Of a stretch of DNA of 64,000 nucleotides, positions 243 through 62,431 are shown in pieces. Below the pieces are notes generated by a model, which did not search any database, had not been told where the DNA came from, and saw only the letters and a list, made by a program, of their open reading frames with translations. Position 1 is the stretch's first letter. Every line of letters starts with the position of its first letter. A program made the position numbers and the translations under genes. This DNA comes from Isurus oxyrinchus (taxonomy: Eukaryota), in NCBI GenBank assembly GCA_026770705.1, contig JANJGN010000010.1:89404001-89468000 (forward strand). Direction: 5' to 3'.

Positions 243-455
243 CGGGTGATAATATTTGTCCATTGGCTGTACAGGAGCATGTTGTTGTTTCTGTAGTAGT
301 GGGAGTCACTGTTACTGTTGTTGTAGATTCGAGTGATGTGGTGGGCGTTGTGGTGGTTTCACATTTTCCCGTGAAGTTCAAAATTTCACAACTCTTAATA
401 CATAGAGTGAAATTACAGAGGCCGGATTTACCTGCAGAACTCACTATAGCCTGCC
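243..455 (-). CDS. Mucin repeat exon r1 (213 nt; numbered by window position)
   Basis: tcttccag|GG...CCCG|gtaagt; GQAIVSSAGKSGLCNFTLCIKSCEILNFTGKCETTTTPTTSLESTTTVTVTPTTTETTTCSCTANGQILSP. Confidence 0.9.
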
Positions 456-3400
456 CTGGAAGACAAATGTCAGGAGAAGGTTTCAGTCATCTCATACCAT
501 TCTTCACTCAGATAACATGTTTACCTCTAGAAAAATGTATAGAACTGACCAGTCTGGCGTTAAGACAATTAAATGCTAAGTATAAGGCTAAATTTTTACA
601 ATGAAAGAAGATTCCAAAGTTAAACCATCAACATCAGCAGCTAAATATTTCCTCAGCTCTGATCGCACGTATAAACCTCCTCGTTTGGAAAGTTAAATTT
701 TTCTGCTGCTGTTGTGTTTGGTTTACAAAATGGGACAGAACAATGTTGAAACAGGTTAACTGGGTTTGTAAAAGAGCAAATTGGATGCTGTAGAACGAGT
801 CTACTGGTTGAAAATACTAAATTGAGCAAATCAGAAATTTGGGGACAGTGTTAAACTTTTTCCATCCGTACAACCAATATAATGTCTCTGCCTGAACGAA
901 CAATCATACGGACATATTCAGTGCAGCACAAAACTCTGATAACTGACTGACTAAATGAAGCAGTCAAAAGTGCTGAGCATTAGAAAGTTGCCCAATTTGT
1001 ACGGACTTTCCAAACAGGCGAGACTTTTGCTGCAAATGCAGAATGAGAGTACGAACATTAAAGCTTGGACCTCGCTCGGTGATTCTCCATTGACACAATG
1101 TTGCATTCCTCATTTCAGTGGGACACAGGGCAACAAGTAGAGCACAGCAACCTGTGCGGAAACATTTAGTATCTTTAACCATTGTTGTGTGAATGTGAGT
1201 GTGTAATCTGGAATCATTATTTCAGATGTGCAGAGCATGAAGATATCCCTTTCTCCAAGGCAGGCGTCTCTCGGTTGAAAACTTATGGAGATGTCAAATC
1301 ACATTTTGAATACGACAGATGACAGATTTCAATACAAATAATCCTGGGAACAGATGCCTAATTATTCAGAAGAACATCCACTTTGTGTCCAAGAATATGA
1401 AGGAGAGGTCTGGAACTTCACATCAACAAACTGTGTCAATTATTGCATACACTCATGCTGGTTATTAGACATGATTGGCAGTAGTGTCTTGTGGCAAACG
1501 ATTGTGCCAGATATTCAATAACTTATACACTTACCGGGTGATAATATTTGTCCACTGGCTGTACAGGAGCATGTTGTTGTTTCTGTAGTAGTGGGAGTCA
1601 CTGTTACTGTTGTTGTAGATTCTAGTGTAGTGCTGGGCGCTGTGGTGGTTTCACATTTTCCCGTGTACTTCAAAATTTCACAACTCTTAGTACATAGAGT
1701 GAAATTACAGAGCCCAGATTTACCTGCAGAACTGACTATAGCCTGGCCTGGAAGACAAAAGTCAGGAAAAGGTTTCAGGCATCCCCTTCCATTGATCCTT
1801 CTAATATTACGCTTACCAACAAAAATCAATATATAGCTGACAGAGCCTCATATTTTGACATTTAAGAGCTAACACCAACGCTGAAAGTTTAGAATAAAAG
1901 AAGATTCCACCTCTAGGTGAAATTCATGGGTCTGGAAAATATGACGGCCAATATTAGAAGCTAAATACTTCATGCACCCCGATTACAGGTCTAACTCTCC
2001 TCATTCCAGAATGTTAAATGATATTGCAATTGTTTGTGTTTGGTTTAAAAATGTGGACTGAACAATGTTGATACATGTTAAATGGGTTTCTAAAGAGCGA
2101 ATTGGGGGCTGCAGAGAGCTTCTGTTTGAGCAAAACACAAAAGTGAGCGAAACAGAGAAATTTGGGGACAGTGTGAAAATTATGCCATTCGTTCAACGAA
2201 TATAATATCTCTGACTGAACGAACAATCATATGGACATATTCAGTGCAGAACAATACACTGATAACTGATTGACATAAGGAAGCAGTCAAAAGTGCTGAT
2301 CATTAGAAAGTTGCCCAACTTGTATGGACTTTCCAAACAGGCGAGACTTTTTTCTGGAAATGCAGAATGAGAGTAAGAACATTAAAGCTTGGACCTCACT
2401 CGATGTCTCTCCATTGACACCATGTTGTTTTCCTCAAGTCCAGGGGGACATAGAGCAACAAGTAGAGCACAGCAACTTGTGTGGACATTTAGTATCTTTA
2501 ATCTTTGGTGTGTGAATGTGAATTTGAAATCTGGAATCATTATTTCAGATGTGCAGAGCATGAAGATGTTCACTTCTCCAAGGGCTGATTCTCTCGGTTG
2601 AAAAATAATGGAGACGTCAAATCACATTTTGAATGGGACAGATGACAGATTTCAATACAAATAATCCTGGGAACAGATGCCTAATTATTCAGAAGAACAT
2701 CCACTTTGTGTCCAAGAATGTGAAGGAGAGGTCTGGAACTTCACATCAACAAACTGTCTCAATTATTGCATAATATCATGCTTGATAATAGATATGATTG
2801 ACAGTATCCTCTTGTGGCAAATGTTTGTGTCAGATATTTAATAACTGATACACTTACCGGGTGATAATATTTGTCCACTGGCTGTACAGGAGCATGTTGT
2901 TGTTTCTGTAGTAGTGGGAGTCACTGTTACTGTTGTTGTAGATTCGAGTGATGTGGTGGGCGTTGTGGTGGTTTCACATTTTCCCGTGAAGTTCAAAATT
3001 TCACAACTCTTAATACATAGAGTGAAATTACAGAGGCCGGATTTACCTGCAGAACTCACTATAGCCTGCCCTGGAAGACAAATGTCAGGAGAAGGTTTCA
3101 GTCATCTCATACCATTCTTCACTCAGATAACATGTTTACCTCTAGAAAAATGTATAGAACTGACCAGTCTGGCGTTAAGACAATTAAATGCTAAGTATAA
3201 GGCTAAATTTTTACAATGAAAGAAGATTCCAAAGTTAAACCATCAACATCAGCAGCTAAATATTTCCTCAGCTCTGATCGCACGTATAAACCTCCTCGTT
3301 TGGAAAGTTAAATTTTTCTGCTGCTGTTGTGTTTGGTTTACAAAATGGGACAGAACAATGTTGAAACAGGTTAACTGGGTTTGTAAAAGAGCAAATTGGA

Positions 3401-6400
3401 TGCTGTAGAACGAGTCTACTGGTTGAAAATACTAAATTGAGCAAATCAGAAATTTGGGGACAGTGTTAAACTTTTTCCATCCGTACAACCAATATAATGT
3501 CTCTGCCTGAACGAACAATCATACGGACATATTCAGTGCAGCACAAAACTCTGATAACTGACTGACTAAATGAAGCAGTCAAAAGTGCTGAGCATTAGAA
3601 AGTTGCCCAATTTGTACGGACTTTCCAAACAGGCGAGACTTTTGCTGCAAATGCAGAATGAGAGTACGAACATTAAAGCTTGGACCTCGCTCGGTGATTC
3701 TCCATTGACACAATGTTGCATTCCTCATTTCAGTGGGACACAGGGCAACAAGTAGAGCACAGCAACCTGTGCGGAAACATTTAGTATCTTTAACCATTGT
3801 TGTGTGAATGTGAGTGTGTAATCTGGAATCATTATTTCAGATGTGCAGAGCATGAAGATATCCCTTTCTCCAAGGCAGGCGTCTCTCGGTTGAAAACTTA
3901 TGGAGATGTCAAATCACATTTTGAATACGACAGATGACAGATTTCAATACAAATAATCCTGGGAACAGATGCCTAATTATTCAGAAGAACATCCACTTTG
4001 TGTCCAAGAATATGAAGGAGAGGTCTGGAACTTCACATCAACAAACTGTGTCAATTATTGCATACACTCATGCTGGTTATTAGACATGATTGGCAGTAGT
4101 GTCTTGTGGCAAACGATTGTGCCAGATATTCAATAACTTATACACTTACCGGGTGATAATATTTGTCCACTGGCTGTACAGGAGCATGTTGTTGTTTCTG
4201 TAGTAGTGGGAGTCACTGTTACTGTTGTTGTAGATTCTAGTGTAGTGCTGGGCGCTGTGGTGGTTTCACATTTTCCCGTGTACTTCAAAATTTCACAACT
4301 CTTAGTACATAGAGTGAAATTACAGAGCCCAGATTTACCTGCAGAACTGACTATAGCCTGGCCTGGAAGACAAAAGTCAGGAAATGGTTTCAGGCATCCC
4401 CTTCCATTGATCCTTCTAATATTACGCTTACCAACAAAAATCAATATATAGCTGACAGAGCCTCATATTTTGACATTTAAGAGCTAACACCAACGCTGAA
4501 AGTTTAGAATAAAAGAAGATTCCACCTCTAGGTGAAATTCATGGGTCTGGAAAATATGACGGCCAATATTAGAAGCTAAATACTTCATGCACCCCGATTA
4601 CAGGTCTAACTCTCCTCATTCCAGAATGTTAAATGATATTGCAATTGTTTGTGTTTGGTTTAAAAATGTGGACTGAACAATGTTGATACATGTTAAATGG
4701 GTTTCTAAAGAGCGAATTGGGGGCTGCAGAGAGCTTCTGTTTGAGCAAAACACAAAAGTGAGCGAAACAGAGAAATTTGGGGACAGTGTGAAAATTATGC
4801 CATTCGTTCAACGAATATAATATCTCTGACTGAACGAACAATCATATGGACATATTCAGTGCAGAACAATACACTGATAACTGATTGACATAAGGAAGCA
4901 GTCAAAAGTGCTGATCATTAGAAAGTTGCCCAACTTGTATGGACTTTCCAAACAGGCGAGACTTTTTTCTGGAAATGCAGAATGAGAGTAAGAACATTAA
5001 AGCTTGGACCTCACTCGATGTCTCTCCATTGACACCATGTTGTTTTCCTCAAGTCCAGGGGGACATAGAGCAACAAGTAGAGCACAGCAACTTGTGTGGA
5101 CATTTAGTATCTTTAATCTTTGGTGTGTGAATGTGAATTTGAAATCTGGAATCATTATTTCAGATGTGCAGAGCATGAAGATGTTCACTTCTCCAAGGGC
5201 TGATTCTCTCGGTTGAAAAATAATGGAGACGTCAAATCACATTTTGAATGGGACAGATGACAGATTTCAATACAAATAATCCTGGGAACAGATGCCTAAT
5301 TATTCAGAAGAACATCCACTTTGTGTCCAAGAATGTGAAGGAGAGGTCTGGAACTTCACATCAACAAACTGTCTCAATTATTGCATAATATCATGCTTGA
5401 TAATAGATATGATTGACAGTATCCTCTTGTGGCAAATGTTTGTGTCAGATATTTAATAACTGATACACTTACCGGGTGATAATATTTGTCCATTGGCTGT
5501 ACAGGAGCATGTTGTTGTTTCTGTAGTAGTGGGAGTCACTGTTACTGTTGTTGTAGATTCGAGTGATGTGGTGGGCGTTGTGGTGGTTTCACATTTTCCC
5601 GTGAAGTTCAAAATTTCACAACTCTTAATACATAGAGTGAAATTACAGAGGCCGGATTTACCTGCAGAACTCACTATAGCCTGCCCTGGAAGACAAATGT
5701 CAGGAGAAGGTTTCAGTCATCTCATACCATTCTTCACTCAGATAACATGTTTACCTCTAGAAAAATGTATAGAACTGACCAGTCTGGCGTTAAGACAATT
5801 AAATGCTAAGTATAAGGCTAAATTTTTACAATGAAAGAAGATTCCAAAGTTAAACCATCAACATCAGCAGCTAAATATTTCCTCAGCTCTGATCGCACGT
5901 ATAAACCTCCTCGTTTGGAAAGTTAAATTTTTCTGCTGCTGTTGTGTTTGGTTTACAAAATGGGACAGAACAATGTTGAAACAGGTTAACTGGGTTTGTA
6001 AAAGAGCAAATTGGATGCTGTAGAACGAGTCTACTGGTTGAAAATACTAAATTGAGCAAATCAGAAATTTGGGGACAGTGTTAAACTTTTTCCATCCGTA
6101 CAACCAATATAATGTCTCTGCCTGAACGAACAATCATACGGACATATTCAGTGCAGCACAAAACTCTGATAACTGACTGACTAAATGAAGCAGTCAAAAG
6201 TGCTGAGCATTAGAAAGTTGCCCAATTTGTACGGACTTTCCAAACAGGCGAGACTTTTGCTGCAAATGCAGAATGAGAGTACGAACATTAAAGCTTGGAC
6301 CTCGCTCGGTGATTCTCCATTGACACAATGTTGCATTCCTCATTTCAGTGGGACACAGGGCAACAAGTAGAGCACAGCAACCTGTGCGGAAACATTTAGT

Positions 6401-9400
6401 ATCTTTAACCATTGTTGTGTGAATGTGAGTGTGTAATCTGGAATCATTATTTCAGATGTGCAGAGCATGAAGATATCCCTTTCTCCAAGGCAGGCGTCTC
6501 TCGGTTGAAAACTTATGGAGATGTCAAATCACATTTTGAATACGACAGATGACAGATTTCAATACAAATAATCCTGGGAACAGATGCCTAATTATTCAGA
6601 AGAACATCCACTTTGTGTCCAAGAATATGAAGGAGAGGTCTGGAACTTCACATCAACAAACTGTGTCAATTATTGCATACACTCATGCTGGTTATTAGAC
6701 ATGATTGGCAGTAGTGTCTTGTGGCAAACGATTGTGCCAGATATTCAATAACTTATACACTTACCGGGTGATAATATTTGTCCACTGGCTGTACAGGAGC
6801 ATGTTGTTGTTTCTGTAGTAGTGGGAGTCACTGTTACTGTTGTTGTAGATTCTAGTGTAGTGCTGGGCGCTGTGGTGGTTTCACATTTTCCCGTGTACTT
6901 CAAAATTTCACAACTCTTAGTACATAGAGTGAAATTACAGAGCCCAGATTTACCTGCAGAACTGACTATAGCCTGGCCTGGAAGACAAAAGTCAGGAAAA
7001 GGTTTCAGGCATCCCCTTCCATTGATCCTTCTAATATTACGCTTACCAACAAAAATCAATATATAGCTGACAGAGCCTCATATTTTGACATTTAAGAGCT
7101 AACACCAACGCTGAAAGTTTAGAATAAAAGAAGATTCCACCTCTAGGTGAAATTCATGGGTCTGGAAAATATGACGGCCAATATTAGAAGCTAAGTACTT
7201 CATGCACCCCGATTACAGGTCTAACTCTCCTCATTCCAGAATGTTAAATGATATTGCAATTGTTTGTGTTTGGTTTAAAAATGTGGACTGAACAATGTTG
7301 ATACATGTTAAATGGGTTTCTAAAGAGCGAATTGGGGGCTGCAGAGAGCTTCTGTTTGAGCAAAACACAAAAGTGAGCGAAACAGAGAAATTTGGGGACA
7401 GTGTGAAAATTATGCCATTCGTTCAACCAATATAATATCTCTGCCTGAACGAACAATCATTTGGACATATTCAGTGCAGAACAATACACTGATAACTGAT
7501 TGACTAAATGAAGCAGTCAAAAGTGCTGATCATTAGAAAGTTGCCCAATTTGTACGGACTTTCCAAACAGGCGAGACTTTTTTCTGGAAATGCAGAATGA
7601 GAGTAAGAACATTAAAGCTTGGACCTCACTCGGTGTCTCTCCATTGACACCATGTTGTTTTCCTCAAGTCCAGGGGGACACAGAGCAACAAGTAGAGCAC
7701 AGCAACTTGTGTGGACATTTAGTATCTTTAATCTTTGGTGTGTGAATGTGATTTTGAAATCTGGAATCATTATTTCAGATGTGCAAAGCAGGAAGACGTC
7801 CACTTCTCCAAGGGCTGATTCTCTCGGTTGAAAAATAATGGAGACGTCAAATCACATTTTGAATGGGACAGATGACAAATTTCAATACAAATAATCCTGG
7901 GAACAGATGCCTAATTATTCAGAAGAACATCCACTTTGTGTCCAAGAATGTGAAGGAGAGGTCTGGAACTTCACATCAACAAACTGTCTCAATTATTGCA
8001 TACACTCATGCTGGTTATTAGACATGATTGGCAGTAGTGTCTTGTGGCAAACGATTGTGCCAGATATTCAATAACTTATACACTTACCGGGTGATAATAT
8101 TTGTCCACTGGCTGTACAGGAGCATGTTGTTGTTTCTGTAGTAGTGGGAGTCACTGTTACTGTTGTTGTAGATTCTAGTGTAGTGCTGGGCGCTGTGGTG
8201 GTTTCACATTTTCCCGTGTACTTCAAAATTTCACAACTCTTAGTACATAGAGTGAAATTACAGAGGCCAGATTCACCTGCAGAACTGACTATAGCCTGGC
8301 CTGGAAGACAAAAGTCAGGAAAAGGTTTCAGCCATCTCCTTCCATTCATCACTCTGAGATTACTCTTACCAACAAAATTAAACATATAGCTGACAGAGCC
8401 TCATATTTTGACATTTAAGAGCTGAGACCAACGCTGAATGTTTAGGACGAAAGAAGATTCCACCTCAAGGTTATAGGCATGGACGTGGAAAATATGACGG
8501 CCAATATTAGAAGCTAAATATTTCATGAGCTCCAATTGCAGGTCTAACAATCCTCTTTCCAGAATGTTAAATGATATTGCAATTGTTTGTGTTTGGTTTA
8601 CAAATGTGGACTGAACAATGTTGATACACCTTAAATGGGTTTCTAAAGAGTAAATTGGGGGCTGTAGAAAGAGTCCGTTTGAGCAAAACACAAAAGTGAG
8701 CAAAACAGAGGAATTTGGGGACAGTGCGAAACTTGTGCCAACCGTACAACTGATATTATGTCTCTGCCTGAATGAACAATCATTTGGACATATTCAGTGC
8801 AGCACAAAACACTGATAACTGATTGACTTAAGGAAGCAATCAATAGCGCTGAGCGTTAGAAAATTGCCCAATTTGTGCAAACATTCCGAACAGCCGAGAC
8901 ATTTGCTGGAAATGCCGAATGAGAGTGCGACCATTACTGATTGGACCTCACTTGGCGTCTCTCCTTTGACACAATGTTGATTTTCAAAATCCAGTGGGAC
9001 ACAGGGCAACAAGTAGAGCACAGCAACCTGTGTTGGAAACATTTAGTATCTTTAACCTTTGGTGTGTGAATGTGAATGTGAAATCTGGAATCATTGGTTC
9101 AGATGTGCAGAGCATGAAGATGTCCATTTCTCCAAGGGCTGATTCTCTCGGTTGAATATTTATGGAGACGTCAAATCACATTTTGAATGAGACGGATGAC
9201 AAATTTCAATACAAATAATCCTGGGAACGGATGCCTAATTATTCACTAGAACATCGACTTTGTATCCAACAACATGAAGCAGAGGTCTGGATCTTCACAT
9301 CAACAAACTGTGTCAATTATTGCATACAATCATGCTGGATATTAGACATGATTGACTGTATTCTCTTGTGGCAAATGATTCTGTCAGATATTTAATAATT

Positions 9401-15400: not shown

Positions 15401-18400
15401 CTGAGCATTAGAAAGTTGCCCAATTTGTACGGACTTTCCAAACAGGCGAGACTTTTGCTGCAAATGCAGAATGAGAGTACGAACATTAAAGCTTGGACCT
15501 CGCTCGGTGATTCTCCATTGACACAATGTTGCTTTCCTCATTTCAGTGGGACACAGGGCAACAAGTAGAGCACAGCAAACTGTGCGGAAACATTTAGTAT
15601 CTTTAACCATTGTTGTGTGAATGTGAGTGTGTAATCTGGAATCATTATTTCAGATGTGCAGAGCATGAAGATATCCATTTCTCCAAGGCAGGCGTCTCTC
15701 GGTTGAAAACTTATGGAGATGTCAAATCACATTTTGAATACGACAGATGACAGATTTCAATACAAATAATCCTGGGAACAGATGCCTAATTATTCAGAAG
15801 AACATCCACTTTGTGTCCAAGAATATGAAGGAGAGGTCTGGAACTTCACATCAACAAACTGTGTCAATTATTGCATACACTCATGCTGGATATTAGACAT
15901 GAATGGCAGTAGTGTCTTGTGGCAAACGATTGTGCCAGATATTCAATAACTTATACACTTACCGGGTGATAATATTTGTCCACTGGCTGTACAGGAGCAT
16001 GTTGTTGTTTCTGTAGTAGTGGGAGTCACTGTTACTGTTGTTGTAGATTCTAGTGTAGTGCTGGGCGCTGTGGTGGTTTCACATTTTCCCGTGTACTTCA
16101 AAATTTCACAACTCTTAGTACATAGAGTGAAATTACAGAGCCCAGATTTACCTGCAGAACTGACTATAGCCTGGCCTGGAAGACAAAAGTCAGGAAAAGG
16201 TTTCAGGCATCCCCTTCCATTGATCCTTCTAATATTACGCTTACCAACAAAAATCAATATATAGCTGACAGAGCCTCATATTTTGACATTCAAGAGCAAA
16301 CACCAAAGCTGAAAGTTTAGAATAAAAGAAGATTCCACCTCTAGGTGAAAATCATGGATGTGGAAAATATGACGGCCAATATTAGAAGCTAAATATTTCA
16401 TGAGCTCCAATTGCAGGTCTAACTCTCCTCATTCCAGAATGTTAAATGATATTGCAATTGTTTGTGTTTGGTTTAAAAATGTGGACTGAACAATGTTGAT
16501 ACATGTTAAATGGGTTTCTAAAGAGCGAATTGGGGGCTGCAGAGAGCTTCTGTTTGAGCAAAACACAAAAGTGAGCAAAACTTAGAAATTTGGGGACAGT
16601 GTGAAAATTATGCCATTCGTTCAACCAATATAATATCTATGCCTGAATGAACAATCATATGGACATATTCAGTGCAGAACAATACACTGATAACTGATTG
16701 ACTAAATGAAGCAGTCAAAAGTGCTGATCATTAGAAAGTTGCCCAATTTGTACGGACTTTCCAAACAGGCGAGACTTTTTTCTGGAAATGCAGAATGAGA
16801 GTAAGAACATTAAAGCTTGGACCTCACTCGGTGTCTCTCCATTGACACCATGTTGTTTTCCTCAAGTCCAGGGAGACATAGAGCAACAAGTAGAGCACAG
16901 CAACCTGTGTGAACATTTAGTATCTTTAATCTTTGGTGTGTGAATGTGAATTTGAAATCTGGAATCATTATTTCAGATGTGCAAAGCATGAAGATGTCCA
17001 CTTCTCCAAGGGCTGATTCTCTCGGTTGAAAAATAATGGAGACGTCAAATCACATTTTGAATGGGACAGATGACAAATTTCAATACAAATAATCGTGGGA
17101 ACAGATGCCTAATTATTCAGAAGAACATCCACTTTGTGACCAAGAATATGAAGGAGAGGTCTGGAACTTCACATCAACAAACTGTCTCAATTATTGCATA
17201 CACTCATGCTGGATATTAGACATGATTGGCAGTAGTGTCTTGTGGCAAACGATTGTGCCAGATATTCAATAACTTATACACTTACCGGGTGATAATAATT
17301 GTCCATTGGCTGTACAGGAGCATGTTGTTGTTTCTGTAGTAGTGGGAGTCACTGTTACAGTTGTTGTAGATTCTAGTGTAGTGCTGGGCGCTGTGGTGGT
17401 TTCACATTTTCCCGTGTACTTCAAAATTTCACAACTCTTTGTACATAGAGTGAAATTACAGAGGCCAGATTCACCTGCAGAACTGACTATAGCCTGGCCT
17501 GGAAGACAAAAGTCAGGAAAAGGTTTCAGCCATCTCCTTCCATTCATCACTCTGAGATTACTCTTAGCAACAAAATTAAACATATAGCTGACAGAGCCTC
17601 ATATTTTGACATTTAAGAGCTGAGACCAACGCTGAATGTTTAGGATGAAAGAAGATTCCACCTCAAGGTTATAGGCATGGACGTGGAAAATATGACGGCC
17701 AATATTAGAAGCTAAATATTTCATGAGCTCCAATTGCAGGTCTAACAATCCTCTTTCCAGAATGTTAAATGATATTGCAATTGTTTGTGTTTGGTTTACA
17801 AATGTGGACTGAACAATGTTGATACACCTTAAATGGGTTTCTAAAGAGTAAATTGGGGGCTGTAGAAAGAGTCCGTTTGAGCAAAACACAAAAGTGAGCA
17901 AAACAGAGGAATTTGGGGACAGTGCGAAACTTGTGCCAACCGTACAACTGATATTATGTCTCTGCCTGAATGAACAATCATTTGGACATATTCAGTGCAG
18001 CACAAAACACTGATAAATGATTGACTTAAGGAAGCAATCAATAGCGCTGAGCGTTAGAAAATTGCCCAATTTGTGCAAACATTCCGAACAGCCGAGACAT
18101 TTGCTGGAAATGCCGAATGAGAGTGCGACCATTACTGATTGGACCTCACTTGGCGTCTCTCCTTTGACACAATGTTGATTTTCAAAATCCAGTGGGACAC
18201 AGGGCAACAAGTAGAGCACAGCAACCTGTGTGGAAACATTTAGTATCTTTAACCTTTGGTGTGTGAATGTGAATGTGAAATCTGGAATCATTGGTTCAGA
18301 TGTGCAGAGCATGAAGATGTCCATTTCTCCAAGGGCTGATTCTCTCGGTTGAATATTTATGGAGACGTCAAATCACATTTTGAATGAGACGGACGACAAA

Positions 18401-33400: not shown

Positions 33401-36400
33401 AAGAACAAGGCTAAATTTTTACAATGAAAGAAGATTCCAAAGTTAAACTATCAACATGAGCAGCTAAATATTTCCTCAGCTCCGATCGCACGCATAAACC
33501 TCCTCGTTTGGAAAGTTAAATTTTTCTGCTGCTGTTGTGTTTGGTTTACAAAATGGGACAGAACAATGTTGAAACAGGTTAACTGGGTTTGTAAAGAGCA
33601 AATTGGATGCTGTAGAACGAGTCTACTGGTTGAAAATACTAAATTGAGCAAATCAGAAATTTGGGGACAGTGTTAAACTTTTTCCATCCGTACAACCAAT
33701 ATAATGTCTCTGCCTGAACGAACAATCATACAGACATATTCAGTGCAGCACAAAACTCTGATAACTGACTGACTAAATGAAGCAGTCAAAAGTGCTGAGC
33801 ATTAGAAAGTTGCCCAATTTGTACGGACTTTCCAAACAGGCGAGACTTTTGCTGCAAATGCAGAATGAGAGTACGAACATTAAAGCTTGGACCTCGCTCG
33901 GTGATTCTCCATTGACACAATGTTGCTTTCCTCATTTCAGTGGGACACAGGGCAACAAGTAGAGCACAGCAACCTGTGCGGAAACATTTAGTATCTTTAA
34001 CCATTGTTGTGTGAATGTGAATTTGAAATCTGGAATCATTATTTCAGATGTGCAAAGCATGAAGATGTCCACTTCTCCAAGGGCTGATTCTCTTGGTTGA
34101 AAAATAATGGAGACGTCAAATCACATTTTGAATGGGACAGATGACAAATTTCAATACAAATAATCATGGGAACAGATGCCTAATTATTCAGAAGAACATC
34201 CACTTTGTGTCCAAGAATATGAAGGAGAGGTCTGGAACTTCACATGAACAAACTGTCTCAATTATTGCATACACTCATGCTGGATATTAGACATGATTGG
34301 CAGTAGTGTCTTGTGGCAAACGATTGTGCCAGATATTCAATAACTTATACACTTACCGGGTGATAATATTTGTCCATTGGCTGTACAGGAGCATGTTGTT
34401 GTTTCTGTACTAGTGGGAGTTACTGTTACTGTTGTTGTAGATTCTAGTGTAGTGCTGGGCGCTGTGGTGGTTTCACATTTTCCCGTGTACTTCAAAATTT
34501 CACAACTCTTAGTACATAGAGTGAAATTACAGAGGCCGGATTTACCTGCAGAACTGACTATAGCCTGGCCTGGAAGACAAAAGTCAGGAAAAGGTTTCAG
34601 GCATCTCATTCCATTCTTCACTCTGATATTACGTTTACCAACAAAAATCAATATATATCTGACAGAGCCTCATATTTTGACATTTAAGAGCTAGGACCAA
34701 CGCTGAAAGTTTAGAACGAAAGAAGATTCCACCTCAAGGTGAAAGTCATGGATGTGGAAAATATAACGGCCAATATTAGAAGCTAAGTATTTCATGCGCC
34801 CCAATAACAGGTTTAACTCTCCTCATTCCAGAATGTTAAATGATATTGCAATTGTTTGTGGTTGGTTCACAAATGTGGACTGAACAATGTTGATACACCT
34901 TAAATGGGTTTCTAAAGAGTAAATTGGGGGCTGTAGAAAGAGTCCGTTTGAGCAAAACACAAAAGTGAGCAAAACAGAGGAATTTGGGGACAGTGCGAAA
35001 CTTGTGCCAACCGTACAACTGATATTATGTCTCTGCCTGAATGAACAATCATTTGGACATATTCAGTGCAGCACAAAACACTGATAACTGATTGACTTAA
35101 GGAAGCAATCAATAGCGCTGAGCGTTAGAAAATTGCCCAATTTGTGCAAACATTCCGAACAGCCGAGACATTTGCTGGAAATGCCGAATGAGAGTGCGAC
35201 CTTTACTGATTGGACCTCACTTGGCGTCTCTCCTTTGACACAATGTTGATTTTCAAAATCCAGTGGGACACAGGGCAACAAGTAGAGCACAGCAACCTGT
35301 GTGGAAACATTTAGTATCTTTAACCTTTGGTGTGTGAATGTGAATGTGAAATCTGGAATCATTGGTTCAGATGTGCAGAGCATGAAGATGTCCATTTCTC
35401 CAAGGGCTGATTCTCTCGGTTGAATATTTATGGAGACGTCAAATCACATTTTGAATGAGACGGACGACAAATTTCAATACAAATAATCCTGGGAACGGAT
35501 GCCTAATTATTCACTAGAACATCGAATTTGTATCCAACAACGTGAAGGAGAGGTCTGGAACTTCACATCAACAAACTGTGTCAATTATTGCATACAATCA
35601 TGCTGGATATTAGACGTGATTGACTGTATTCTCTTGTGGCAAATGATTATGTCAGATATTTAATAATAGATACACTTACCGGGTGATAATATTTGTCCAT
35701 TGGCTGTACAGGAGCATGTTGTTGTTTCTGTAGTAGTGGGAGTCACTGTAACTGTTGTTGTAGATTCTAGTGTAGTGCTGGGCGCTGTGGTGGTTTGACA
35801 TTTTCCCGTGTACTTCAAAATTTCACAACTCTTAGTACATAGAGTGAAATTACAGAGGCCGGATTTACCTGCAGAACTTACTATAGCCTGCCCTGGAAGA
35901 GAAATATCAGGAGAAGGTTTCAGTCATCTCATACCATTCTTCACTCAGATAACATGTTTACCTCTAGAAAAATGTATGGAGCTGACCAGTCTGGCATTAA
36001 GACAATTAAATGCTAAGAACAAGGCTAAATTTTTACAATGAAAGAAGATTCCAAAGTTAAACTATCAACATGAGCAGCTAAATATTTCCTCAGCTCCGAT
36101 CGCACGCATAAACCTCCTCGTTTGGAAAGTTAAATTTTTCTGCTGCTGTTGTGTTTGGTTTACAAAATGGGACAGAACAATGTTGAAACAGGTTAACTGG
36201 GTTTGTAAAGAGCAAATTGGATGCTGTAGAACGAGTCTACTGGTTGAAAATACTAAATTGAGCAAATCAGAAATTTGGGGACAGTGTTAAACTTTTTCCA
36301 TCCGTACAACCAATATAATGTCTCTGCCTGAACGAACAATCATACGGACATATTCAGTGCAGCACAAAACTCTGATAACTGACTGACTAAATGAAGCAGT

Positions 36401-45400: not shown

Positions 45401-48400
45401 TGTTTGAGCAAAACACAAAAGTGAGCAAAACTTAGAAATTTGGGGACAGTGTGAAAATTATGCCATTCGTTCAACCAATATAATATCTCTGCCTGAATGA
45501 ACAATCATATGGACATATTCAGTGCAGAACAATACACTGATAACTGATTGACTAAATGAAGCAGTCAAAAGTGCTGATCATTAGAAAGTTGCCCAATTTG
45601 TACCGACTTTCCAAACAGGCGAGACTTTTTTCTGGAAATGCAGAATGAGAGTAAGAACATTAAAGCTTGGACCTCACTCGGTGTCTCTCCATTGACACCA
45701 TGTTGTTTTCCTCAAGTCCAGGGAGACATAGAGCAACAAGTAGAGCACAGCAACCTGTGTGAACATTTAGTATCTTTAATCTTTGGTGTGTGAATGTGAA
45801 TTTGAAATCTGGAATCATTATTTCAGATGTGCAAAGCATGAAGATGTCCACTTCTCCAAAGGCTGATTCTCTCGGTTGAAAAATAATGGAGACGTCAAAT
45901 CACATTTTGAATGGGACAGATGACAAATTTCAATACAAATAATCGTGGGAACAGATGCCTAATTATTCAGAAGAACATCCACTTTGTGTCCAAGAATATG
46001 AAGGAGAGGTCTGGAACTTCACATCAACAAACTGTCTCAATTATTGCATACTGTCATGCTGGATATTAGACATGATTGGCAGTAGTGTCTTGTGGCAAAC
46101 GATTGTGCCAGATATTCAATAACTTATACACTTACCGGGTGATAATATTTGTCCATTGCCTGTACAGGAGCATGTTGTTGTTTCTGTAGTAGTGGGAGTC
46201 ACTGTTACTGTTGTTGTAGATTCTAGTGTAGTGCTGGGCGCTGTGGTGGTTTGACATTTTCCCGTGTACTTCAAAATTTCACAACTCTTAGTACATAGAG
46301 TGAAATTACAGAGGCCGGATTTACCTGCAGAACTTACTATAGCCTGCCCTGGAAGAGAAATATCAGGAGAAGGTTTCAGTCATCTCATACCATTCTTCAC
46401 TCAGATAACATGTTTACCTCTAGAAAAATGTATAGAGCTGACCAGTCTGGCATTAAGACAATTAAATACTAAGAACAAGGCTAAATTTTTACAATGAAAG
46501 AAGATTCCAAAGTTAAACTATCAACATGAGCAGCTAAATATTTCCTCAGCTCCGATCGCACGCATAAACCTCCTCGTTTGGAAAGTTAAATTTTTCTGCT
46601 GCTGTTGTGTTTGGTTTACAAAATGGGACAGAACAATGTTGAAACAGGTTAACTGGGTTTGTAAAGAGCAAATTGGATGCTGTAGAACGAGTCTACTGGT
46701 TGAAAATACTAAATTGAGCAAATCAGAAATTTGGGGACAGTGTTAAACTTTTTCCATCCGTACAACCAATATAATGTCTCTGCCTGAACGAACAATCATA
46801 CAGACATATTCAGTGCAGCACAAAACTCTGATAACTGACTGACTAAATGAAGCAGTCAAAAGTGCTGAGCATTAGAAAGTTGCCCAATTTGTACGGACTT
46901 TCCAAACAGGCGAGACTTTTGCTGCAAATGCAGAATGAGAGTACGAACATTAAAGCTTGGACCTCGCTCGGTGATTCTCCATTGACACAATGTTGCTTTC
47001 CTCATTTCAGTGGGACACAGGGCAACAAGTAGAGCACAGCAACCTGTGCGGAAACATTTAGTATCTTTAACCATTGTTGTGTGAATGTGAGTGTGTAATC
47101 TGGAATCATTATTTCAGATGTGCAGAGCATGAAGATATCCATTTCTCCAAGGCAGGCGTCTCTCGGTTGAAAACTTATGGAGATGTCAATTCACATTTTG
47201 AATACGACAGATGACAGATTTCAATACAAATAATCCTGGGAACAGATGCCTAATTATTCAGAAGAACATCCACTTTGTGTCCAAGAATATGAAGGAGAGG
47301 TCTGGAACTTCACATCAACAAACTGTGTCAATTATTGCATACACTCATGCTGGATATTAGACATGAATGGCAGTAGTGTCTTGTGGCAAACGATTGTGCC
47401 AGATATTCAATAACTTATACACTTACCGGGTGATAATATTTGTCCACTGGCTGTACAGGAGCATGTTGTTGTTTCTGTAGTAGTGGGAGTCACTGTTACT
47501 GTTGTTGTAGATTCTAGTGTAGTGCTGGGCGCTGTGGTGGTTTCACATTTTCCCGTGTACTTCAAAATTTCACAACTCTTAGTACATAGAGTGAAATTAC
47601 AGAGCCCAGATTTACCTGCAGAACTGACTATAGCCTGGCCTGGAAGACAAAAGTCAGGAAAAGGTTTCAGGCATCCCCTTCCATTGATCCTTCTAATATT
47701 ACGCTTACCAACAGAAATCAATATATAGCTGACAGAGCCTCATATTTTGACATTTAAGAGCTAACACCAACGCTGAAAGTTTAGAATAAAAGAAGATTCC
47801 ACCTCAAGGTGAAAGTCATGGATGTGGAAAATATGACGGCCAATATTAGAAGCTAAGTACTTCATGCACCCCGATTACAGGTCTAACTCTCCTCATTCCA
47901 GAATGTTAAATGATATTGCAATTGTTTGTGTTTGGTTTAAAAATGTGGACTGAACAATGTTGATACATGTTAAATGGGTTTCTAAAGAGCGAATTGGGGG
48001 CTGCAGAGAGCTTCTGTTTGAGCAAAACACAAAAGTGAGCAAAACTTATAAATTTGGGGACAGTGTGAAAATTATGCCATTCGTTCAACCAATATAATAT
48101 CTATGCCTGAATGAACAATCATATGGACATATTCAGTGCAGAACAATACACTGATAACTGATTGACTAAATGAAGCAGTCAAAAGTGCTGATCATTAGAA
48201 AGTTGCCCAATTTGTACCGACTTTCCAAACAGGCGAGACTTTTTTCTGGAAATGCAGAATGAGAGTAAGAACATTAAAGCTTGGACCTCACTCGGTGTCT
48301 CTCCATTGACACCATGTTGTTTTCCTCAAGTCCAGGGAGACATAGAGCAACAAGTAGAGCACAGCAACCTGTGTGAACATTTAGTATCTTTAATCTTTGG

Positions 48401-51400
48401 TGTGTGAATGTGAATTTGAAATCTGGAATCATTATTTCAGATGTGCAAAGCATGAAGATGTCCACTTCTCCAAGGGCTGATTCTCTCGGTTGAAAAATAA
48501 TGGAGACGTCAAATCACATTTTGAATGGGACAGATGACAAATTTCAATACAAATAATCGTGGGAACAGATGCCTAATTATTCAGAAGAACATCCACTTTG
48601 TGTCCAAGAATATGAAGGAGAGGTCTGGAACTTCACATCAACAAACTGTCTCAATTATTGCATACTGTCATGCTGGATATTAGACATGATTGGCAGTAGT
48701 GTCTTGTGGCAAACGATTGTGCCAGATATTCAATAACTTATACACTTACCGGGTGATAATATTTGTCCATTGCCTGTACAGGAGCATGTTGTTGTTTCTG
48801 TAGTAGTGGGAGTCACTGTTACTGTTGTTGTAGATTCGATTGCAGTGGTGGGCGCTGTGGTGGTTTCACATTTTCCCGTGTACTTCAAAATTTCACAACT
48901 CTTAGTACATAGAGTGAAATCACAGAGGCCGGATTTACCTGCAGAACTTACTATAGCCTGGCCTGGAAGACAAAAGTCAGGAAAAGGTTTCAGCCATCTC
49001 CTTCCATTCATCACTCTGAGATTACTCTTACCAACAAAATTAAACATATTGCTGACAGAGCCTCATATTTTGACATTTAAGAGCTGAGACCAACGCTGAA
49101 TGTTTAGGACGAAGGAATATTCCACCTCAAGGCTATAGGCATGGACGTGGAAAATATGACGGCCAATATTAGAAGCTAAATATTTCATGAGCTCCAATTG
49201 CAGCTCTAACAATCCTCTTTCCAGAATGTTAAATGATATTGCAATTGTTTGTGTTTGGTTTACAAATGTGGACTGAACAATGTTCATACACGTTAAATGG
49301 GTTTCTAAAGAGTAAATTGGGGGCTGTAGAAAGAGTCCATTTGAGCAAAACACAAAAGTGAGCAAAACAGAGGAATTTGGGGACAGTGCGAAACTTGTGC
49401 CAACCGTACAACTGATATTATGTCTCTGCCTGAATGAACAATCATTTGGACATATTCACTGCAGCACAAAACACTGATAAATGATTGACTAAAGGAAGCA
49501 ATCAATAGCGCTGTGCGTTAGAAAATTGCCCAATTTGTGCAAACATTCCGAACAGGCGAGACATTTGCTGGAAATGATGAATGAGAGTGCGACCATTACT
49601 GATTGGACCTCACTCGGCGTCTCTCCATTGACACAATGTTGATTTTCAAAATCCAGTGGGACACAGGGCAACAAGTAGAGCACAGCAACCTGTGTTGGAA
49701 ACATTTAGTATCTTTAACCTTTGGTGTGTGAATGTGAATGTGAAATCTGGAATCATTGGTTCAGATGTGCAGAGCATGAAGATGTCCATTTCTCCAAGGG
49801 CTGATTCTCTCGGTTGATTACTTATGGAGACGTCAAATCACATTTTGAATGGGACAGACAACAAATTTCAATACAAATAATCCTGGGAACGGATGCCTAA
49901 TTATTCACTGGAACATCGACTTTGTATCCCAGAACGTGAAGGAGAGGTCTGGATCTTCACATCAACAAACTGTGTCAATTATTGCATACAATCATGCTGG
50001 ATATTAGACGTGATTGACTGTATTCTCTTGTGGCAAATGATTATGTCAGATATTTAATAATTGTTTCAGGCATCTCATACCATTCTTCATTCAGATACTA
50101 AATTTACCACATATAAACATATTGCTGACAGCGTCTCATGTTTTCACAAGTAAGAGCTAAGAACAAAGCTGAATGTTTAGAATGAAAGAAGATTCCACCT
50201 CAAGGTTATAGTAATGGATGTGGAAAATATAATGGCCAATATTAGAAGCTAAATATTTCATCAGCTTGTATCGCATGTAAAACTCTCCTCTTTCTGGAAT
50301 GTTAAATGTTTCTGCTGGTGTTTGTGTTTGGTTTACAAATGTAGACGAACAATGTTGAAACATGGGGTCCTCTACATACATTCAAATTGGATTCTCCATA
50401 CTGTAGGACTTTATTCATCAGAGAAAGGGCTGTAATTCCTCTAAACCCTTGCACAATGCTGGTTACCTTAATGATCTCTTACCTTTTAAGAACAGAGCCC
50501 TTTGACCAATTGCTTCACTTAGTGTTTTCTTTAAATAATGGTCAATAAGGAGTTGAATTCTTGTATCTGTACATTTGGTGGGTAATTGGTGTCAATCAGC
50601 ATGAGGTATTTTTCCTTGCTGTTTATTGAAGCTGGCAGCATATAGGATTAATCTAGTCGGTCTATTCTTAGCTGTCAGCTGAAGAAAACGATTGTGTTAG
50701 GCTTTGATTGATACATGTGGGGGACTCTCTTCCATCTCATCCAAAAAACCCCATATATCGATGAGAACTCTCAAAGGATTGCCTGAATCTTGTCATGGTT
50801 TGAGAGCTGGCCTATTGTCATGCTGTTTTGTTTTATTTGATCACTTTAGAAGCCTTTAAGAGTCACCCACACTTCATAACAGTGGAATCATGTGCAGGCT
50901 AGACTAGCTTGACCTGGCCTGTCCCTGCTCTGTGACTACTTGGATTTCCACAACAATTTGACAAATCGAAGATAATTTTTCTGGCCTGAACCTGCAAATT
51001 GCCAGATTTATTTTAATCACCTTTACAACTCACCATGGTGAGATTTGGCCTATCAACAACAACAAAAATACAACCAGTATTTATCTGGTACTATGTGGAG
51101 AAATATCCCAAAACACCTCACTGAAGCACAATCAGAAAAAATTTGACACCAAATCAAGGAGGTGGCGATTAAGGAAGCGTGATTTAAAAGCTGAGTCAAA
51201 GGGACATGGGCTTAGAGAAGTGAAGGGAGCTGGGCCAGTGTAGGGAAATCCTTCCAGTGTAGATTCAGGCAGATGAAGGGAGGTGGGAATGCACAGGGCC
51301 AGAGTTGGAGGAATGCATTGTTTTGGAGGGCTGTGGAGTTGGATAAAGTTACATAGGTAGGAAGGAGTGAAGGATTTAAACAGGGGGGAAGGAATTTTAA

Positions 51401-54400
51401 ATTTGACACGTTTAGACACTGGGAGCCCATGTAAGTTGGGGGGTGCAATGGCCATGGAGCAGGGCAACATCAAGTTTCTGGTCCAGTACCACCAAGCTAC
51501 AGTAGCTGAATAGACCTTAAGTATCAGCAATGTACATTAATGGCACACTAACCATCACTCATTGGCAATGAATTCTGTTTCTGTGGTCAAATCCAATAGA
51601 GGACAAATAAAAAGGAAGCAGATTTCTGCACTGGGCAACACACTGAGAGATTCTGACATGTGATCACACAAGTATACAGAAGTCACATCCTGTTCTAGAT
51701 AGAGAATGCACATATTCCAGTACTTGACTGGAACATAGCATAGAAAAAGCTTTAATAGTTACCTTGGCAGGGGACTACTGTAAAACAGAAAGAAGCATTA
51801 CAGACCGAAAACAGGAAAACACAATAAACAGCTAGTCATTTGGAAGGGGCAGGAAGTAATTTTCCAAATAACATGAGTAAATATAAAGACAGTTTTTCAA
51901 TAATCTGTTTAAAATAAGTAATATGGTAGATTTTAATAACTAACACACTTACCAGGTGACAGTGTTTGCCCATTTACTCTGCATAAGCAAGCTGCTGTTG
52001 TAGGGGTGATTGTTGTTGATGTTGTTGGTGAGGAAGTAGTCAGTGTTGCAGTGGTTGTTGGGGCGACAGATGCTGTTGATGAAGTAGTTGATGTTGTTGG
52101 TGAGGAAGTAGCCAAAGTTGATGTTGTAGGGATGGCTGTTGTTGATGTTGTTGGTGAGGAAGTAGTCAACGTTGATGTCGTAGGGATGACTGTTGTTGAT
52201 GTTGCTGAGGCAGTAGTCAATGTTGATGTTGTTGCAGGGATGATTGTTGTTGAAGTTGTTGGTGAGGAAGTAGTCGGTGTTGCAGTGGTTGTTGGGGTGA
52301 CTGTTGTTGTTGATGAAGTAGTTGATGTTGTTTGGCTGTGTTCTGATGTGGTTTCAGTGGTTATTGTCTTCGGTGTAGTGGTTGTTGTCGTTGATGTTTC
52401 TGTCCGCTTGAATGGTGCTGACACAGGAGGAGTTGTAGTAGTGATGGGGACTGTTTTATTCAGAATAGAGGCTGTAGGGGTGATGACAGTTGTTGATTTT
52501 GAAGAAGTAGTTGATGTTGCTGCAGTCGTCGGGGTGACTGTCGTTGATGCTGAGAAGGTAGTCGATATTGCTGCTGTTGAGGGAGTGACTGTTGTTGGTG
52601 AGGATGTAGTTGATGTTGTTGTAGGGAGAACTGTTGATGCTGTTGGCGAGGAAGTAGTTGATGTTGATGTAGGGCTGACTGTTGTTGATGTTGGTGAGGA
52701 TGTAATTGATGTTGATGTAGGGCTGACTATTATTGATGTTGTTGGTGAGGAAGTAATCAATGTTGTTGTTGTAGGGATGATTGTTGTTGATGTTGTTGGT
52801 GAGGAAGTAGTCAATATTGATTTTGTTGTAGGGATGACTGTTGATGTCATTGGTGAGGAAGGCGTCAATGTTGATGTTGTAGGGATGACCGTTGTTGATG
52901 TTGGTGAGGAAGTCGCCTTTGTTGATATTGTTGTAGGGATGACTGTTGTTGATGTTGTTGGTGAGGAAGTCACCAATGTTGATGTTGTTGTAGCGATGAC
53001 TGTTGTTGGTGTTGTTTGTGAGGAAGCCATCAAAGTTGATGTTGTTGTAGGGATGAATGTTGTTGATGTTATCGGGGAGGAAGTCATCAATGTTGTTGTT
53101 GTTCCAGGAATGACTGTTGATGTTATAGGTGAGGAAGTCATCGATGTTGATGTTGTAAGTTCGACTGTTGTTGATGTTGTTGGTGAGGAAGTCGCCGATG
53201 TTGATGTCGTTATGGGTATGACTGTTCTTGATGTTGTTGGTAAGGAAATAGTCGATGATGCTGTTGTTATAGGAATGACTGTTGTAGTTGCTGTTGATGA
53301 GGAAGTAGGTGATTTTGATATTGTAGTAGGGATGGCTGCTGTTGTTGCTGAGGATGTAGTCGATGCTAATGTTGTTGTAGGGGTGACTGTTGTTGTTGTT
53401 GCTGAGGAAGTAGCTGATGTTGGTTGGCTTTGTTCTGATGTGGTTTCAGTGTTTTTTTCCATTGTGCTTAATAATGTATTTGGAGTTATTGTTGTCCTAT
53501 TTGTTAGTGCTGTCTCAGCAGTAGTTGTAACAGTGACATGAGCTGTCTTTGTTGGAATATATATTGTAGAGGTGATGGTTGTTGCTGAGGAAGTAGTTGG
53601 TGTTGTTTCACTTTGTTCTGATTTGTTTTCCATTGTGGTAGAACTTCTAGTGCCAGATGCCGTGAGTGGAGGTGTGGTTTCGAAGGTTAGTGTTGTACTG
53701 GGAATTGCAGAGGTCTTAGGAGCACATGGGTAGGCCTTTCTTATTATTGTCCCATTCACACTGCATGTTGCTTTTATGCATCCTCCAATGCCATCTGTTG
53801 TATGGTAGATAATATCACCTTCATGGAATGTTTTGCCATCATAAACACAGGTGCACTCTGATAAAGAAAAATGATAATAATGACATAGGGACATAGGGAA
53901 AAGAGAAGGCTATTTAGCCTCTTGAGCCTATTCCATCAGTCTATGAGAACATAGTTGATCTGTGACCAAAGTTCATATACCTACTGTTGCCACAGGTCCC
54001 TTATTACCTTCCATTAACACAACTCTATCAATGTTAGGTTTAAAACTTACAATTGACCCAGCATTATTAGGAAATAGAGACAGTTTAAGTAAATTAAATA
54101 TGTATTTGGTTGTTGGGAATAAGGTATATCTTTAAGTTTAATTTATATTTTTTCTATTTGTGAATTCAAGTTTCACTTTAAAATTGAAACCTGAGATTTA
54201 GTTTCATTTTTGAGTGAGGCAGCAGGTCTAAAGCTGTTTCTATACCTGCATTTCTAATGAGTTTTAGGACTCGCAAAGAGAAGTTAAAGTAAACACAAGA
54301 GCAGAAGAAACTGTGCAGTTGCCTAGCAACAGGGGTCCAGAGAGAGGGACACACACGCACTACACACACACACACACACAAACACAAACAGCAGTTTGAG

Positions 54401-61255: not shown

Positions 61256-62066
61256 TGTTAATAGTCAGTGTAACCTGCTGTGTAGTTTCTGCTAATAGTC
61301 GGGGTAACCTGCTGTGTAGTTTCTGTTAATAGTCAGTGTGACCTGCTGTGTAGTTTCTGTTAATAGTCAGTGTGACCTGCTGTGTAGTTTCTGTTAATAA
61401 TCGGGGTAACCTACTGTGTAGTTTCTGCTAATAGTCGGGGTAACCTGCTGTGTAGTTTCTGTTAATAGTTGGGGTAACCTGCTGTGTAGTTTCTGTTAAT
61501 AATCGGGATAACTTGCTGTGTAGTTTCTGTTAATAGTCGGGGTAACCTGCTGTGTAGTTTCTGTTAATAGTCAGTGTAACCTGCTGTGTAATTTCTGTTA
61601 ATAGTCAGTGTAACCTGCTGTGTAGTTTCTGTTAATAATCGGGGTAACCTGCTGTGTAGTTTCTGTTAATAGTTGGGGTAACCTGCTGTGTAGTTTCTGT
61701 TAATAGTCAGGGTAACCTGCTGTGTAGTTTCTGTTAATAATCGGGGTAACCTGCTGTGTAGTTTCTGTTAATAGTCTGTGTAACCTGCTGTGTAGTTTCT
61801 GTTAATAGTCGGGGTAACCTGTGGTGTAGTTTCTGTTAATAATCGGGGTAACCTGCTGGGTAGTTTCTGTTAATAATTGGGGTAACCTGCTGTGTAGTTT
61901 CTGTTAACACTCGGGGTAACCTACTGTGTAGTTTCTGTTAATAGACAGTGTAACCTGCTGTGTAGTTTCTGTTAATAGACAGTGTAACCTGATCTGTGGT
62001 TTCTGTTAATAGTCGGGGTAACCTGATCTGTGGTTTCTGTTAATAGTCGGGGTAACTTGCTGTGTG
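61256..62066. repeat. 34-bp minisatellite, about 24 copies
   Basis: Consensus AATAGTC(AGT/GGG)GTAACCTGCTGTGTAGTTTCTGTT; unit starts at 61260 and 62042 differ by exactly 23 x 34. Confidence 0.97.
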
Positions 62067-62114
62067 GGTTGTTTTTTGTTGGTGCAGCCTGATATGTACT
62101 TTCTGCATTCTTCA

Positions 62115-62425
62115 AATTTATTCTTTGAATATGGGCATCATTGGAAATGCTGCCATTTATTGACCTGAATGTGGTGGTGAAACCACTGCTGTATATGTTG
62201 TGACAGTTCTTTTACAATGCTGTAATGTCCAAGTTCCAGGCTCTTGACCCACCCACAATGAAGAAACCGCAATTCATGCCCGATAATGTGTGACTTTAAA
62301 ATTAACTTGGAGGTGATGGTCTTCCTGTGCACCTGCTGCTCTTGCCCTGAGTGATATGCGTCATGGGTTTTGGAAACTCTGTAGAAAAGGCCCTGCCAAT
62401 GTACTGCACTGCATCCTGTGAGCAG
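62115..62425. mobile_element. Degraded interspersed repeat fragment (LINE-related, unclassified)
   Basis: Resembles a common cartilaginous-fish repeat (atgggcatc...gccatttattg...gtggtggtga; gttccagg..cttgaccca); recalled only. Confidence 0.35.
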
Positions 62426-62431
62426 TTTGTA

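Follow-up and report, generated by a model that had tools for sequence, protein, structure and literature searches.

A 64,000-nucleotide (nt) stretch of the Isurus oxyrinchus genome (contig JANJGN010000010.1, positions 89,404,001 to 89,468,000), called the window below, was analyzed, and comparison of its exons with known proteins supports its assignment to the central part of an elasmobranch gene for a secreted gel-forming mucin of the MUC5 (MUC5AC/5B-like) type. In window coordinates, all exons described here lie on the minus strand, and the protein order is the end of the D3 assembly, a Pro/Thr/Ser-rich (PTS) mucin domain, and then an array of beads and linkers. The gene probably encodes a MUC5-type mucin in which D3 and a PTS core of 577 amino acids (aa) precede a chain with a period of 71 aa, composed of six-Cys all-beta beads and Thr-rich linkers and carrying one conserved N-glycan sequon. 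Its standout feature is that CysD, the folded Cys-rich knot that interrupts the O-glycosylated domain of tetrapod mucins, is replaced by another iterated folded module.

Anatomy and divergence of the repeat array

From position 1 to ∼50,360, the window, which was free of N, consisted of tandemly repeated units of 1,291 or 1,323 bp, and a donor-side 24-nt pattern recurred at 38 sites from 238 to 48,745, with a spacing of 1,291 to 1,324 bp. An initial annotation, made from the sequence alone, had listed 38 exons of exactly 213 nt; all of them were recovered (243 to 48962), separated by introns of 1,078 to 1,111 nt. Every exon had an AG acceptor and a GT donor, was stop-free in a single frame with phase 1 at both ends, and encoded Cys at exon residues 13, 18, 22, 31, 59, and 61, while the splice context consisted of a pyrimidine-rich acceptor and the donor GTAAGT. 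Moreover, an N-x-S/T sequon was present at exon residue 14 in 37 of the 38 exons. The low ends of the exons, from each of which an exon runs 212 nt upward, were located at 243, 1535, 2858, 4150, 5473, 6765, 8088, 9412, 10735, 12026, 13349, 14672, and 15963, at 17286, 18609, 19932, 21255, 22578, 23869, 25192, 26515, 27806, 29129, 30452, 31743, and 33066, and at 34357, 35680, 36971, 38294, 39585, 40908, 42199, 43522, 44813, 46136, 47427, and 48750.

Each repeat exon comprised 31 aa of a module end with four Cys, a 27-aa linker, and 12 aa of the next module start with two Cys, such that the 44-aa six-Cys module straddled the exon junction, which also split a Gly codon. The resulting protein period was 71 aa (44-aa module plus 27-aa Thr-rich linker), and 14 distinct protein variants were counted among the 38 exons, the commonest of which (11/38) had Ser or Thr at 18 of 27 linker positions; the module and linker composition had been given correctly in the initial annotation. 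Its statement that the array runs off the window also held, as position 1 falls inside a repeat intron (1 to 242) at which the array is cut, indicating that the array continues outward past the low end of the window.

All 38 units were aligned in order to compare exons with introns. The mean pairwise difference was 2.8% in the exon versus 10.5% in the intron, with 28/213 versus 332/1,076 variable columns and 0/213 versus 39/1,114 gap columns; between the two unit subfamilies, the exon and intron differences were 3.4% and 14.4%, respectively. Constraint on the frame, the Cys residues, and the splice sites was complete, while that at the residue level was mild. Units differed by 12.6% at lag 1 and by 7.2% at lag 2, and several whole units were 100% identical along their full length, with a higher-order repeat structure. 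The closer likeness at lag 2, together with the identical units, suggests recent duplication or conversion of two-unit blocks.

The repeat intron itself was unevenly conserved, with ∼600 nt at the donor of the upstream exon being 6 to 9% different and the acceptor side 14 to 19% different. A plus-strand open reading frame (ORF) of 54 to 55 aa recurred in the conserved part (e.g., 62 to 226, 1354 to 1521, and 2677 to 2841); it was considered as an antisense exon and rejected, given many replacements between the two unit types.

Gene identity, relatives, and origin of the array

The array is preceded by a 1,905-nt PTS exon (51,953 to 53,857; AG/GT, matching phase) that ties it to the gel-forming mucins. 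Its 5' end (53724 to 53857) encodes a second E-like module of 44 aa with which the D3 assembly ends (labeled E3b here) and which was 66% identical to residues 397 to 446 of the human MUC5AC D3 chain 8qsp_A (E value, 8.9e-19). The PTS domain (51991 to 53723) follows within the same exon, with a 577-aa core in which Ser and Thr account for 61% and Ser, Thr, and Pro for 70.5% of residues, without any Cys, and with ∼15 copies of a degenerate 54- to 57-nt tandem repeat (Tandem Repeats Finder). The 3' end (51953 to 51990) encodes the first half of the first six-Cys module (12 aa and one base of the Gly codon) ahead of a GT donor, in agreement with the upper limit of 51,990 set in the initial annotation. 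In both module position and phase, this exon stops where every repeat exon does, and its last ∼65 nt, together with ∼35 nt of the next intron, align with the tail and donor region of the repeat exon.

Further evidence on gene identity came from array-bearing orthologues. The Chiloscyllium punctatum orthologue (P0011) scored 1,709 bits against human MUC5AC (over residues 40 to 1356 of the orthologue), 1,579 against MUC5B, 1,419 against MUC2, and 732 against VWF, and the gene was called MUC5-type on the basis of the highest score, despite the automatic NCBI naming of its relatives as "mucin-2-like." These scores, along with the MUC5AC match at the start of the PTS exon, bear out the earlier call of a mucin and place it among the gel-forming ones. 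While the window itself holds only the TIL3-end and E3 exons of the N-terminal D assemblies, the Pristis and C. punctatum orthologues contained three VWD, three to four C8, and three TIL stretches according to Pfam. A long Pro/Thr/Ser-rich domain, for which O-glycosylation is predicted, is present in the window as the 577-aa core plus the 38 linkers. A C-terminal region of VWCN-VWD4-C8-TIL, VWC domains, and a cystine knot follows the array in four orthologues (P0003 from Pristis, P0008, P0011 from C. punctatum, and P0013), and residues 3818 to 4161 of the C. punctatum protein match the MUC2-C chain 7qcu; in the Isurus gene, this region lies beyond the window.

Compared with tetrapod MUC5AC, MUC5B, and MUC2, the shark gene, taken together with its orthologues, shares the D assemblies, the D3 tail module, a large PTS exon, an intron-split 44-aa module directly ahead of VWCN/VWD4, and a C-terminal VWD4-VWC-cystine knot region. 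However, the tetrapod proteins carry this module once and have CysD within the PTS region, whereas in the shark, the module and linker occur at least 38 times, with one exon each. CysD, with ∼110 aa and 10 Cys, resembles the shark bead as a folded Cys-rich knot interrupting an O-glycosylated domain but belongs to an unrelated family and is present in few copies within one large exon. Multi-exon mucin repeat arrays are known from MUC19, from which the shark array differs in that every exon contributes to folded six-Cys modules whose halves lie on either side of an exon junction. A search for CysD (Mucin2_WxxW, PF13330), a domain carrying the WxxW motif according to PMC4948705, gave no match either in the window's own PTS exon or in the proteins from Pristis and C. 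punctatum, while this domain is annotated in the alligator and pheasant homologues and in one from a frog. Together with the Cys-free PTS core, this agrees with the earlier proposal of an architecture unlike the PTS-plus-CysD type. Absence of CysD does not exclude a gene from the gel-forming family, given that many frog mucins lack it (15 of 26 in the accessible text of Lang et al. 2016, PMC4948705).

To describe the distribution of the array, the 70-aa exon translation was searched with phmmer against 1.84 billion representative proteins (E ≤ 0.001), the window being searched exon by exon and whole modules for profile and fold analyses being taken from database proteins. Among the eight matches, the seven named ones were all elasmobranch RefSeq/GenBank gene models (Heptranchias perlo, Narcine bancroftii [two], Pristis pectinata, Chiloscyllium plagiosum, Rhinoraja longicauda, and Scyliorhinus torazame), and the eighth was an ENA ORF. 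Cluster mates of these matches comprised a 6,083-aa Narcine model and the 4,161-aa C. punctatum model, and a Rhincodon typus model emerged from a second search. Complete modules identified by a regular expression and profile stretches with at least 10 bits numbered, respectively, 50 and 59 for the long Narcine model, 19 and 21 for Heptranchias, 17 and 28 for C. punctatum, 16 and 17 for the short Narcine model, 9 and 10 for Pristis, and 3 and 4 for C. plagiosum. The profile counts include the D3 tail module in the D3-bearing models (P0003, P0004, and P0011) and some split copies in P0011. The array period ranged from 65 to 74 aa, and the module-linker period was common to sharks and rays at 44 to 76% identity, with the Cys pattern intact. 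Several models were imperfect, being truncated, devoid of VWD4, or padded with intron-derived residues, and the Pristis model was nearly full length, with D1 to D3, PTS, nine modules, VWD4, VWC, and the cystine knot.

The architecture is visible in RefSeq predictions of at least seven elasmobranch species. A module search across proteins, suggested in the initial annotation, contrasted elasmobranch arrays (up to 50 to 59 modules, in one ray model) with one copy per tetrapod homologue, and its caution about novelty was justified, since the architecture is already held in elasmobranch RefSeq gene models. A published description was not found in the open literature, as no paper describing the array was retrieved from open-licence PMC and bioRxiv texts without supplements, among them portions of the main mucin evolution study, by Lang et al. 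2016 (PMC4948705), and of a proteome study on shark skin (PMC10707392).

With regard to origin, the arrays of Scyliorhinus, C. punctatum, and Rhincodon close with a distinct module, ∼40 to 45% identical to the repeats, after which come a short PTS linker, a VWCN-like Cys region, and VWD4. A module of this terminal type was detected exactly once, before VWCN/D4, in all four tetrapod homologues examined (alligator MUC5AC, 30.5 bits; a caecilian "mucin-2," 26.9 bits; and two frog mucins, 16 to 18 bits), in agreement with the earlier statement of a single-copy module ahead of D4. The shark terminal module is of this tetrapod type, the putative ancestral one. Likewise, amplification of the single pre-D4 module into the array, as initially proposed, is supported by the terminal tetrapod-type module, by the identical intron split point and phase in the PTS exon and the repeats, and by the homology of their tails. 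In the proposed mechanism, the ancestral pre-D4 module would already have been split by a phase-1 intron, and unequal exchange between the PTS ahead of the module and a PTS-like linker behind it may have created a hybrid exon (second half, linker, and first half) with a copy of the old intron on either side. The 1.3-kb unit would then have been amplified by unequal crossing-over and conversion, lately in two-unit blocks. The locus would thereby offer a clean example of domain amplification via a symmetric exon straddling a module boundary.

Module fold, possible function, and alternative explanations

A seven-module profile matched residues 397 to 440 of the human MUC5AC chain over its full length without gaps (E value, 4.4e-5) and also weakly matched the E3 sub-module preceding the MUC5AC D3 tail; the E3 region of MUC5AC D3 is described as too flexible for modelling in the available part of PMC11933400. 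AlphaFold2, run on a 14-row alignment, predicted a beta-hairpin followed by a three-stranded sheet (strands at module residues 3 to 5, 8 to 10, 15 to 20, 25 to 31, and 37 to 43), with a predicted local distance difference test score (pLDDT) of 92.7. The top Foldseek rows were MUC2 D3, VWF D'D3, fibronectin Fn1, and VWF TIL'E'. Using VIA-align, Z scores were 5.0 to 5.2 for Fn1, 4.9 for VWF E3 (1197 to 1238), 4.7 for VWF E', 4.2 for MUC5B E', 3.4 to 4.7 for VWC domains (CCN3, collagen IIA, and NELL2), and 3.9 for MUC2 E3 (root mean square deviation of 1.9 over 39 residues, 28% identity). In an unbiased VIA search of 48,161 chains, 19 of the 20 top rows were Fn1, E modules of mucins, VWF, and FCGBP, or VWC, the lone outlier being MSMB3 at rank 9. 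We therefore assign the predicted module, with high confidence, to the Fn1/E module/VWC N-leaf class, a match of fold class in which the Z scores leave homology unproven. The fold class is backed by the significant sequence match to mucin E modules, and the predicted module also fits the description of the VWC "N-leaf" in the accessible text of the MUC2-C paper (PMC10082768).

Pfam returned no family for the repeat, PTS, and TIL3 exons taken singly, with one chance row ("New_glue"; E value, 0.97); a single repeat exon gave chance rows only against the PDB by sequence (E values, 0.56 to 2.7); and no match of the repeat exon to Pfam VWC (PF00093) was obtained at E ≤ 10, the exon holding only a partial module on each side.

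The predicted hairpin and three-stranded sheet are shared with the E modules of VWF and mucins and with the VWC N-leaf. Nevertheless, known E modules follow TIL inside a D assembly, once per assembly, whereas the shark module is solitary between putatively glycosylated linkers and iterated. Fibronectin Fn1 provided the best structural matches (41 to 43 of the 44 residues aligned) and, like the shark beads, consists of small disulfide-stabilized beta modules in tandem in an extracellular protein, where it occurs in at most 12 copies. It differs in showing only 5 to 17% identity with no detectable sequence relation, in having four rather than six Cys, and in the absence of mucin linkers between modules.

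By analogy with these systems, the beads may form rigid, N-glycosylated, protease-resistant, and non-O-glycosylated knots that break the glycan brush every 71 residues. They might take the place of tetrapod MUC2/MUC5 CysD, serving as spacers and as sites of many weak, reversible, non-covalent chain contacts that set gel elasticity. Chain length would be adjustable by recombination and possibly by exon skipping, given that every exon is symmetric and a change in chain length keeps the frame. In mucin heads, TIL/E modules act as disulfide-rich spacers according to the accessible part of PMC7599080. Mucin cores are usually seen as unstructured glycan brushes with CysD as the sole folded interruption, whereas the shark core would be mostly a regular alternation of beads and linkers, providing a naturally occurring test case for the way in which knot spacing sets mucus mechanics. 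Moreover, a fold and a possible role would be assigned to the neglected single pre-VWCN/D4 module of tetrapod MUC5AC-type mucins.

The length of the complete array was approached through three sequencing runs (X2, X4, and X6) of a relative ∼2% diverged, which represent DNA rather than RNA, since their contigs cover introns. Contig depth over the repeat exon (48740 to 48911) relative to the adjoining single-copy sequence was ∼130-fold in X2, ∼141-fold in X4, and ∼114-fold in X6, a summed contig depth ratio that differs from a copy number and to which paralogues would add. An array, or array family, of the order of ∼100 exons and ∼7,000 aa is plausible.

Several observations weigh against the bead-and-linker mucin as the expressed product or limit how firmly its properties can be stated. 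The inclusion of the repeat exons in mRNA is a prediction from exon anatomy, and no sequencing run on record as RNA held this stretch. One run of small size (X1), presumed to be RNA and identical to the window over 282 nt, yielded four contigs, all within the PTS exon, with none on introns and none on the repeat exon, and an exon repeated 38-fold should be far deeper than the PTS exon if both are in the same mRNA. Should X1 be RNA, the PTS exon would be transcribed, and the lack of contigs on the repeat exon would favor skipping or termination; should it be reduced-representation DNA, the result is uninformative, and contigs such as these are unable to prove the absence of the repeat exon from mRNA. 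A search for protein fragments of 39 to 124 aa sharing words with the exon found none, a blank of little weight given its length window. At variable coding sites, 19 of 156 non-synonymous and 10 of 54 synonymous sites gave a ratio of ∼0.65, mildly below 1, and the identity of many units is due to their young age, so that part of the exon identity reflects recency. Regarding the fold, Foldseek returned no row at E ≤ 0.001, and the structural Z scores were low (≤5.2), which is attributable to the module being only 44 aa long. The six invariant Cys would allow three internal bonds, and the functional role of the beads is proposed by analogy only.

In one alternative explanation, the repeat exons are coding but are cassettes, with mRNAs carrying a variable subset of them, and in some tissues none, such that the protein would be shorter and its length set by splicing. 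All 38 exons are interchangeable in phase (1-1), and the putative RNA run with contigs on the PTS exon had none on the repeat exon; however, the nature of that run is a guess, RefSeq predictions elsewhere chain 17 to 59 modules, and strong AG/GT sites with an intact frame in 38/38 copies imply selection on dozens of copies, arguing that most are used. We consider such a cassette arrangement unlikely. A different function, in which the beads bind extended peptides by Fn1-like beta-strand addition, so that the mucin captures microbial adhesins multivalently, as a trap or decoy, or attaches to other matrix proteins, would, by analogy, fit the dozens of identical sites in the array and the presence, among the top structural matches, of Fn1 pairs with bacterial adhesin and collagen peptides (3cal, 2rky, and 3ejh; Z, 4.0 to 5.0). 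Against this, the fold alone is held in common with Fn1 (5 to 17% identity), and fibronectin modules are contiguous, whereas 27-aa, putatively glycosylated linkers intervene here, making a tandem zipper improbable; ligand binding of this kind may thus be regarded as quite doubtful.

Arrays of this kind resemble macrosatellites and are prone to masking or mis-annotation, and the locus could in principle be a young macrosatellite with an exon-derived piece, the copies being non-functional pseudo-exons kept alike by recent duplication or conversion. The fully identical units, the higher-order repeat structure, and the site-count dN/dS (non-synonymous to synonymous ratio) of ∼0.65 would be compatible with such an origin. 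It is nevertheless highly improbable, because the exons are 3.7 to 4.2 times less diverged than their own introns, with no indels against the 39 intron gap columns; because none of the 38 copies has lost any of the six Cys or either splice site; and because the period persists in sharks and rays at 44 to 76% identity.

Beyond the preferred reading of a mucin with a bead-and-linker chain, we tentatively raise a more far-reaching possibility, to which we give a rather low probability. The gene might define a distinct elasmobranch gel-forming mucin core which, in place of an extended glycan brush broken up by a few CysD domains, would be a regular polymer of ∼90 to 140 Fn1/E-like beads forming the longest array of this module known, with symmetric cassette exons tuning its length by recombination and perhaps splicing, and the beads of a tail-to-tail dimer may pair in register like a ladder. 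Since VWC N-leaves mediate dimer contacts in MUC2-C (according to the accessible text of PMC10082768), the beads of two chains may zip the dimer in a similar way. If this were true, the mechanics of shark mucus would be unlike those of tetrapod mucus.

Upstream exons and minor features

Two short exons precede the PTS exon. A 148-nt exon (60932 to 61079; AG/GT, open frame) encodes the TIL3 end together with the first E3-like sub-module and is collinear with the TIL3-E3 region of the orthologues from Pristis (P0003) and C. punctatum (P0011) and of P0004. A 44-nt exon (57361 to 57404; AG/GT), with a phase that fits both adjoining exons, completes the first E3 sub-module and is likewise collinear with the orthologues.

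The intron between the PTS exon and the first repeat exon (48963 to 51952), a region spanned by DNA contigs of the close relative, contains a decayed repeat unit (∼49,000 to 50,360) in which the exon and both splice sites are gone and ∼255 nt are deleted near 50,020 to 50,080. A local alignment intended to define the extent of likeness between this intron and the repeat introns merely recovered the decayed unit, and a targeted alignment was used instead.

Within the PTS exon, contigs from all three DNA runs of the close relative showed a joint jumping back 720 nt (51996 to 52715), suggesting that the relative has ∼720 nt of extra PTS repeats, either as a length polymorphism or as a species difference. 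A 511-aa plus-strand ORF in the same exon (52006 to 53541), rich in Val, Asp, Gly, and Glu, was dismissed as an antisense mirror of the low-complexity PTS sequence. In addition, a 34-nt minisatellite (23.8 copies, 91% matches) was located at 61256 to 62065, in the intron upstream of the TIL3/E3 exon, and intronic minus-strand ORFs at 55863 to 56672 and 62100 to 63700 resembled, as judged by eye from their translations, fragments of reverse-transcriptase retroelements.

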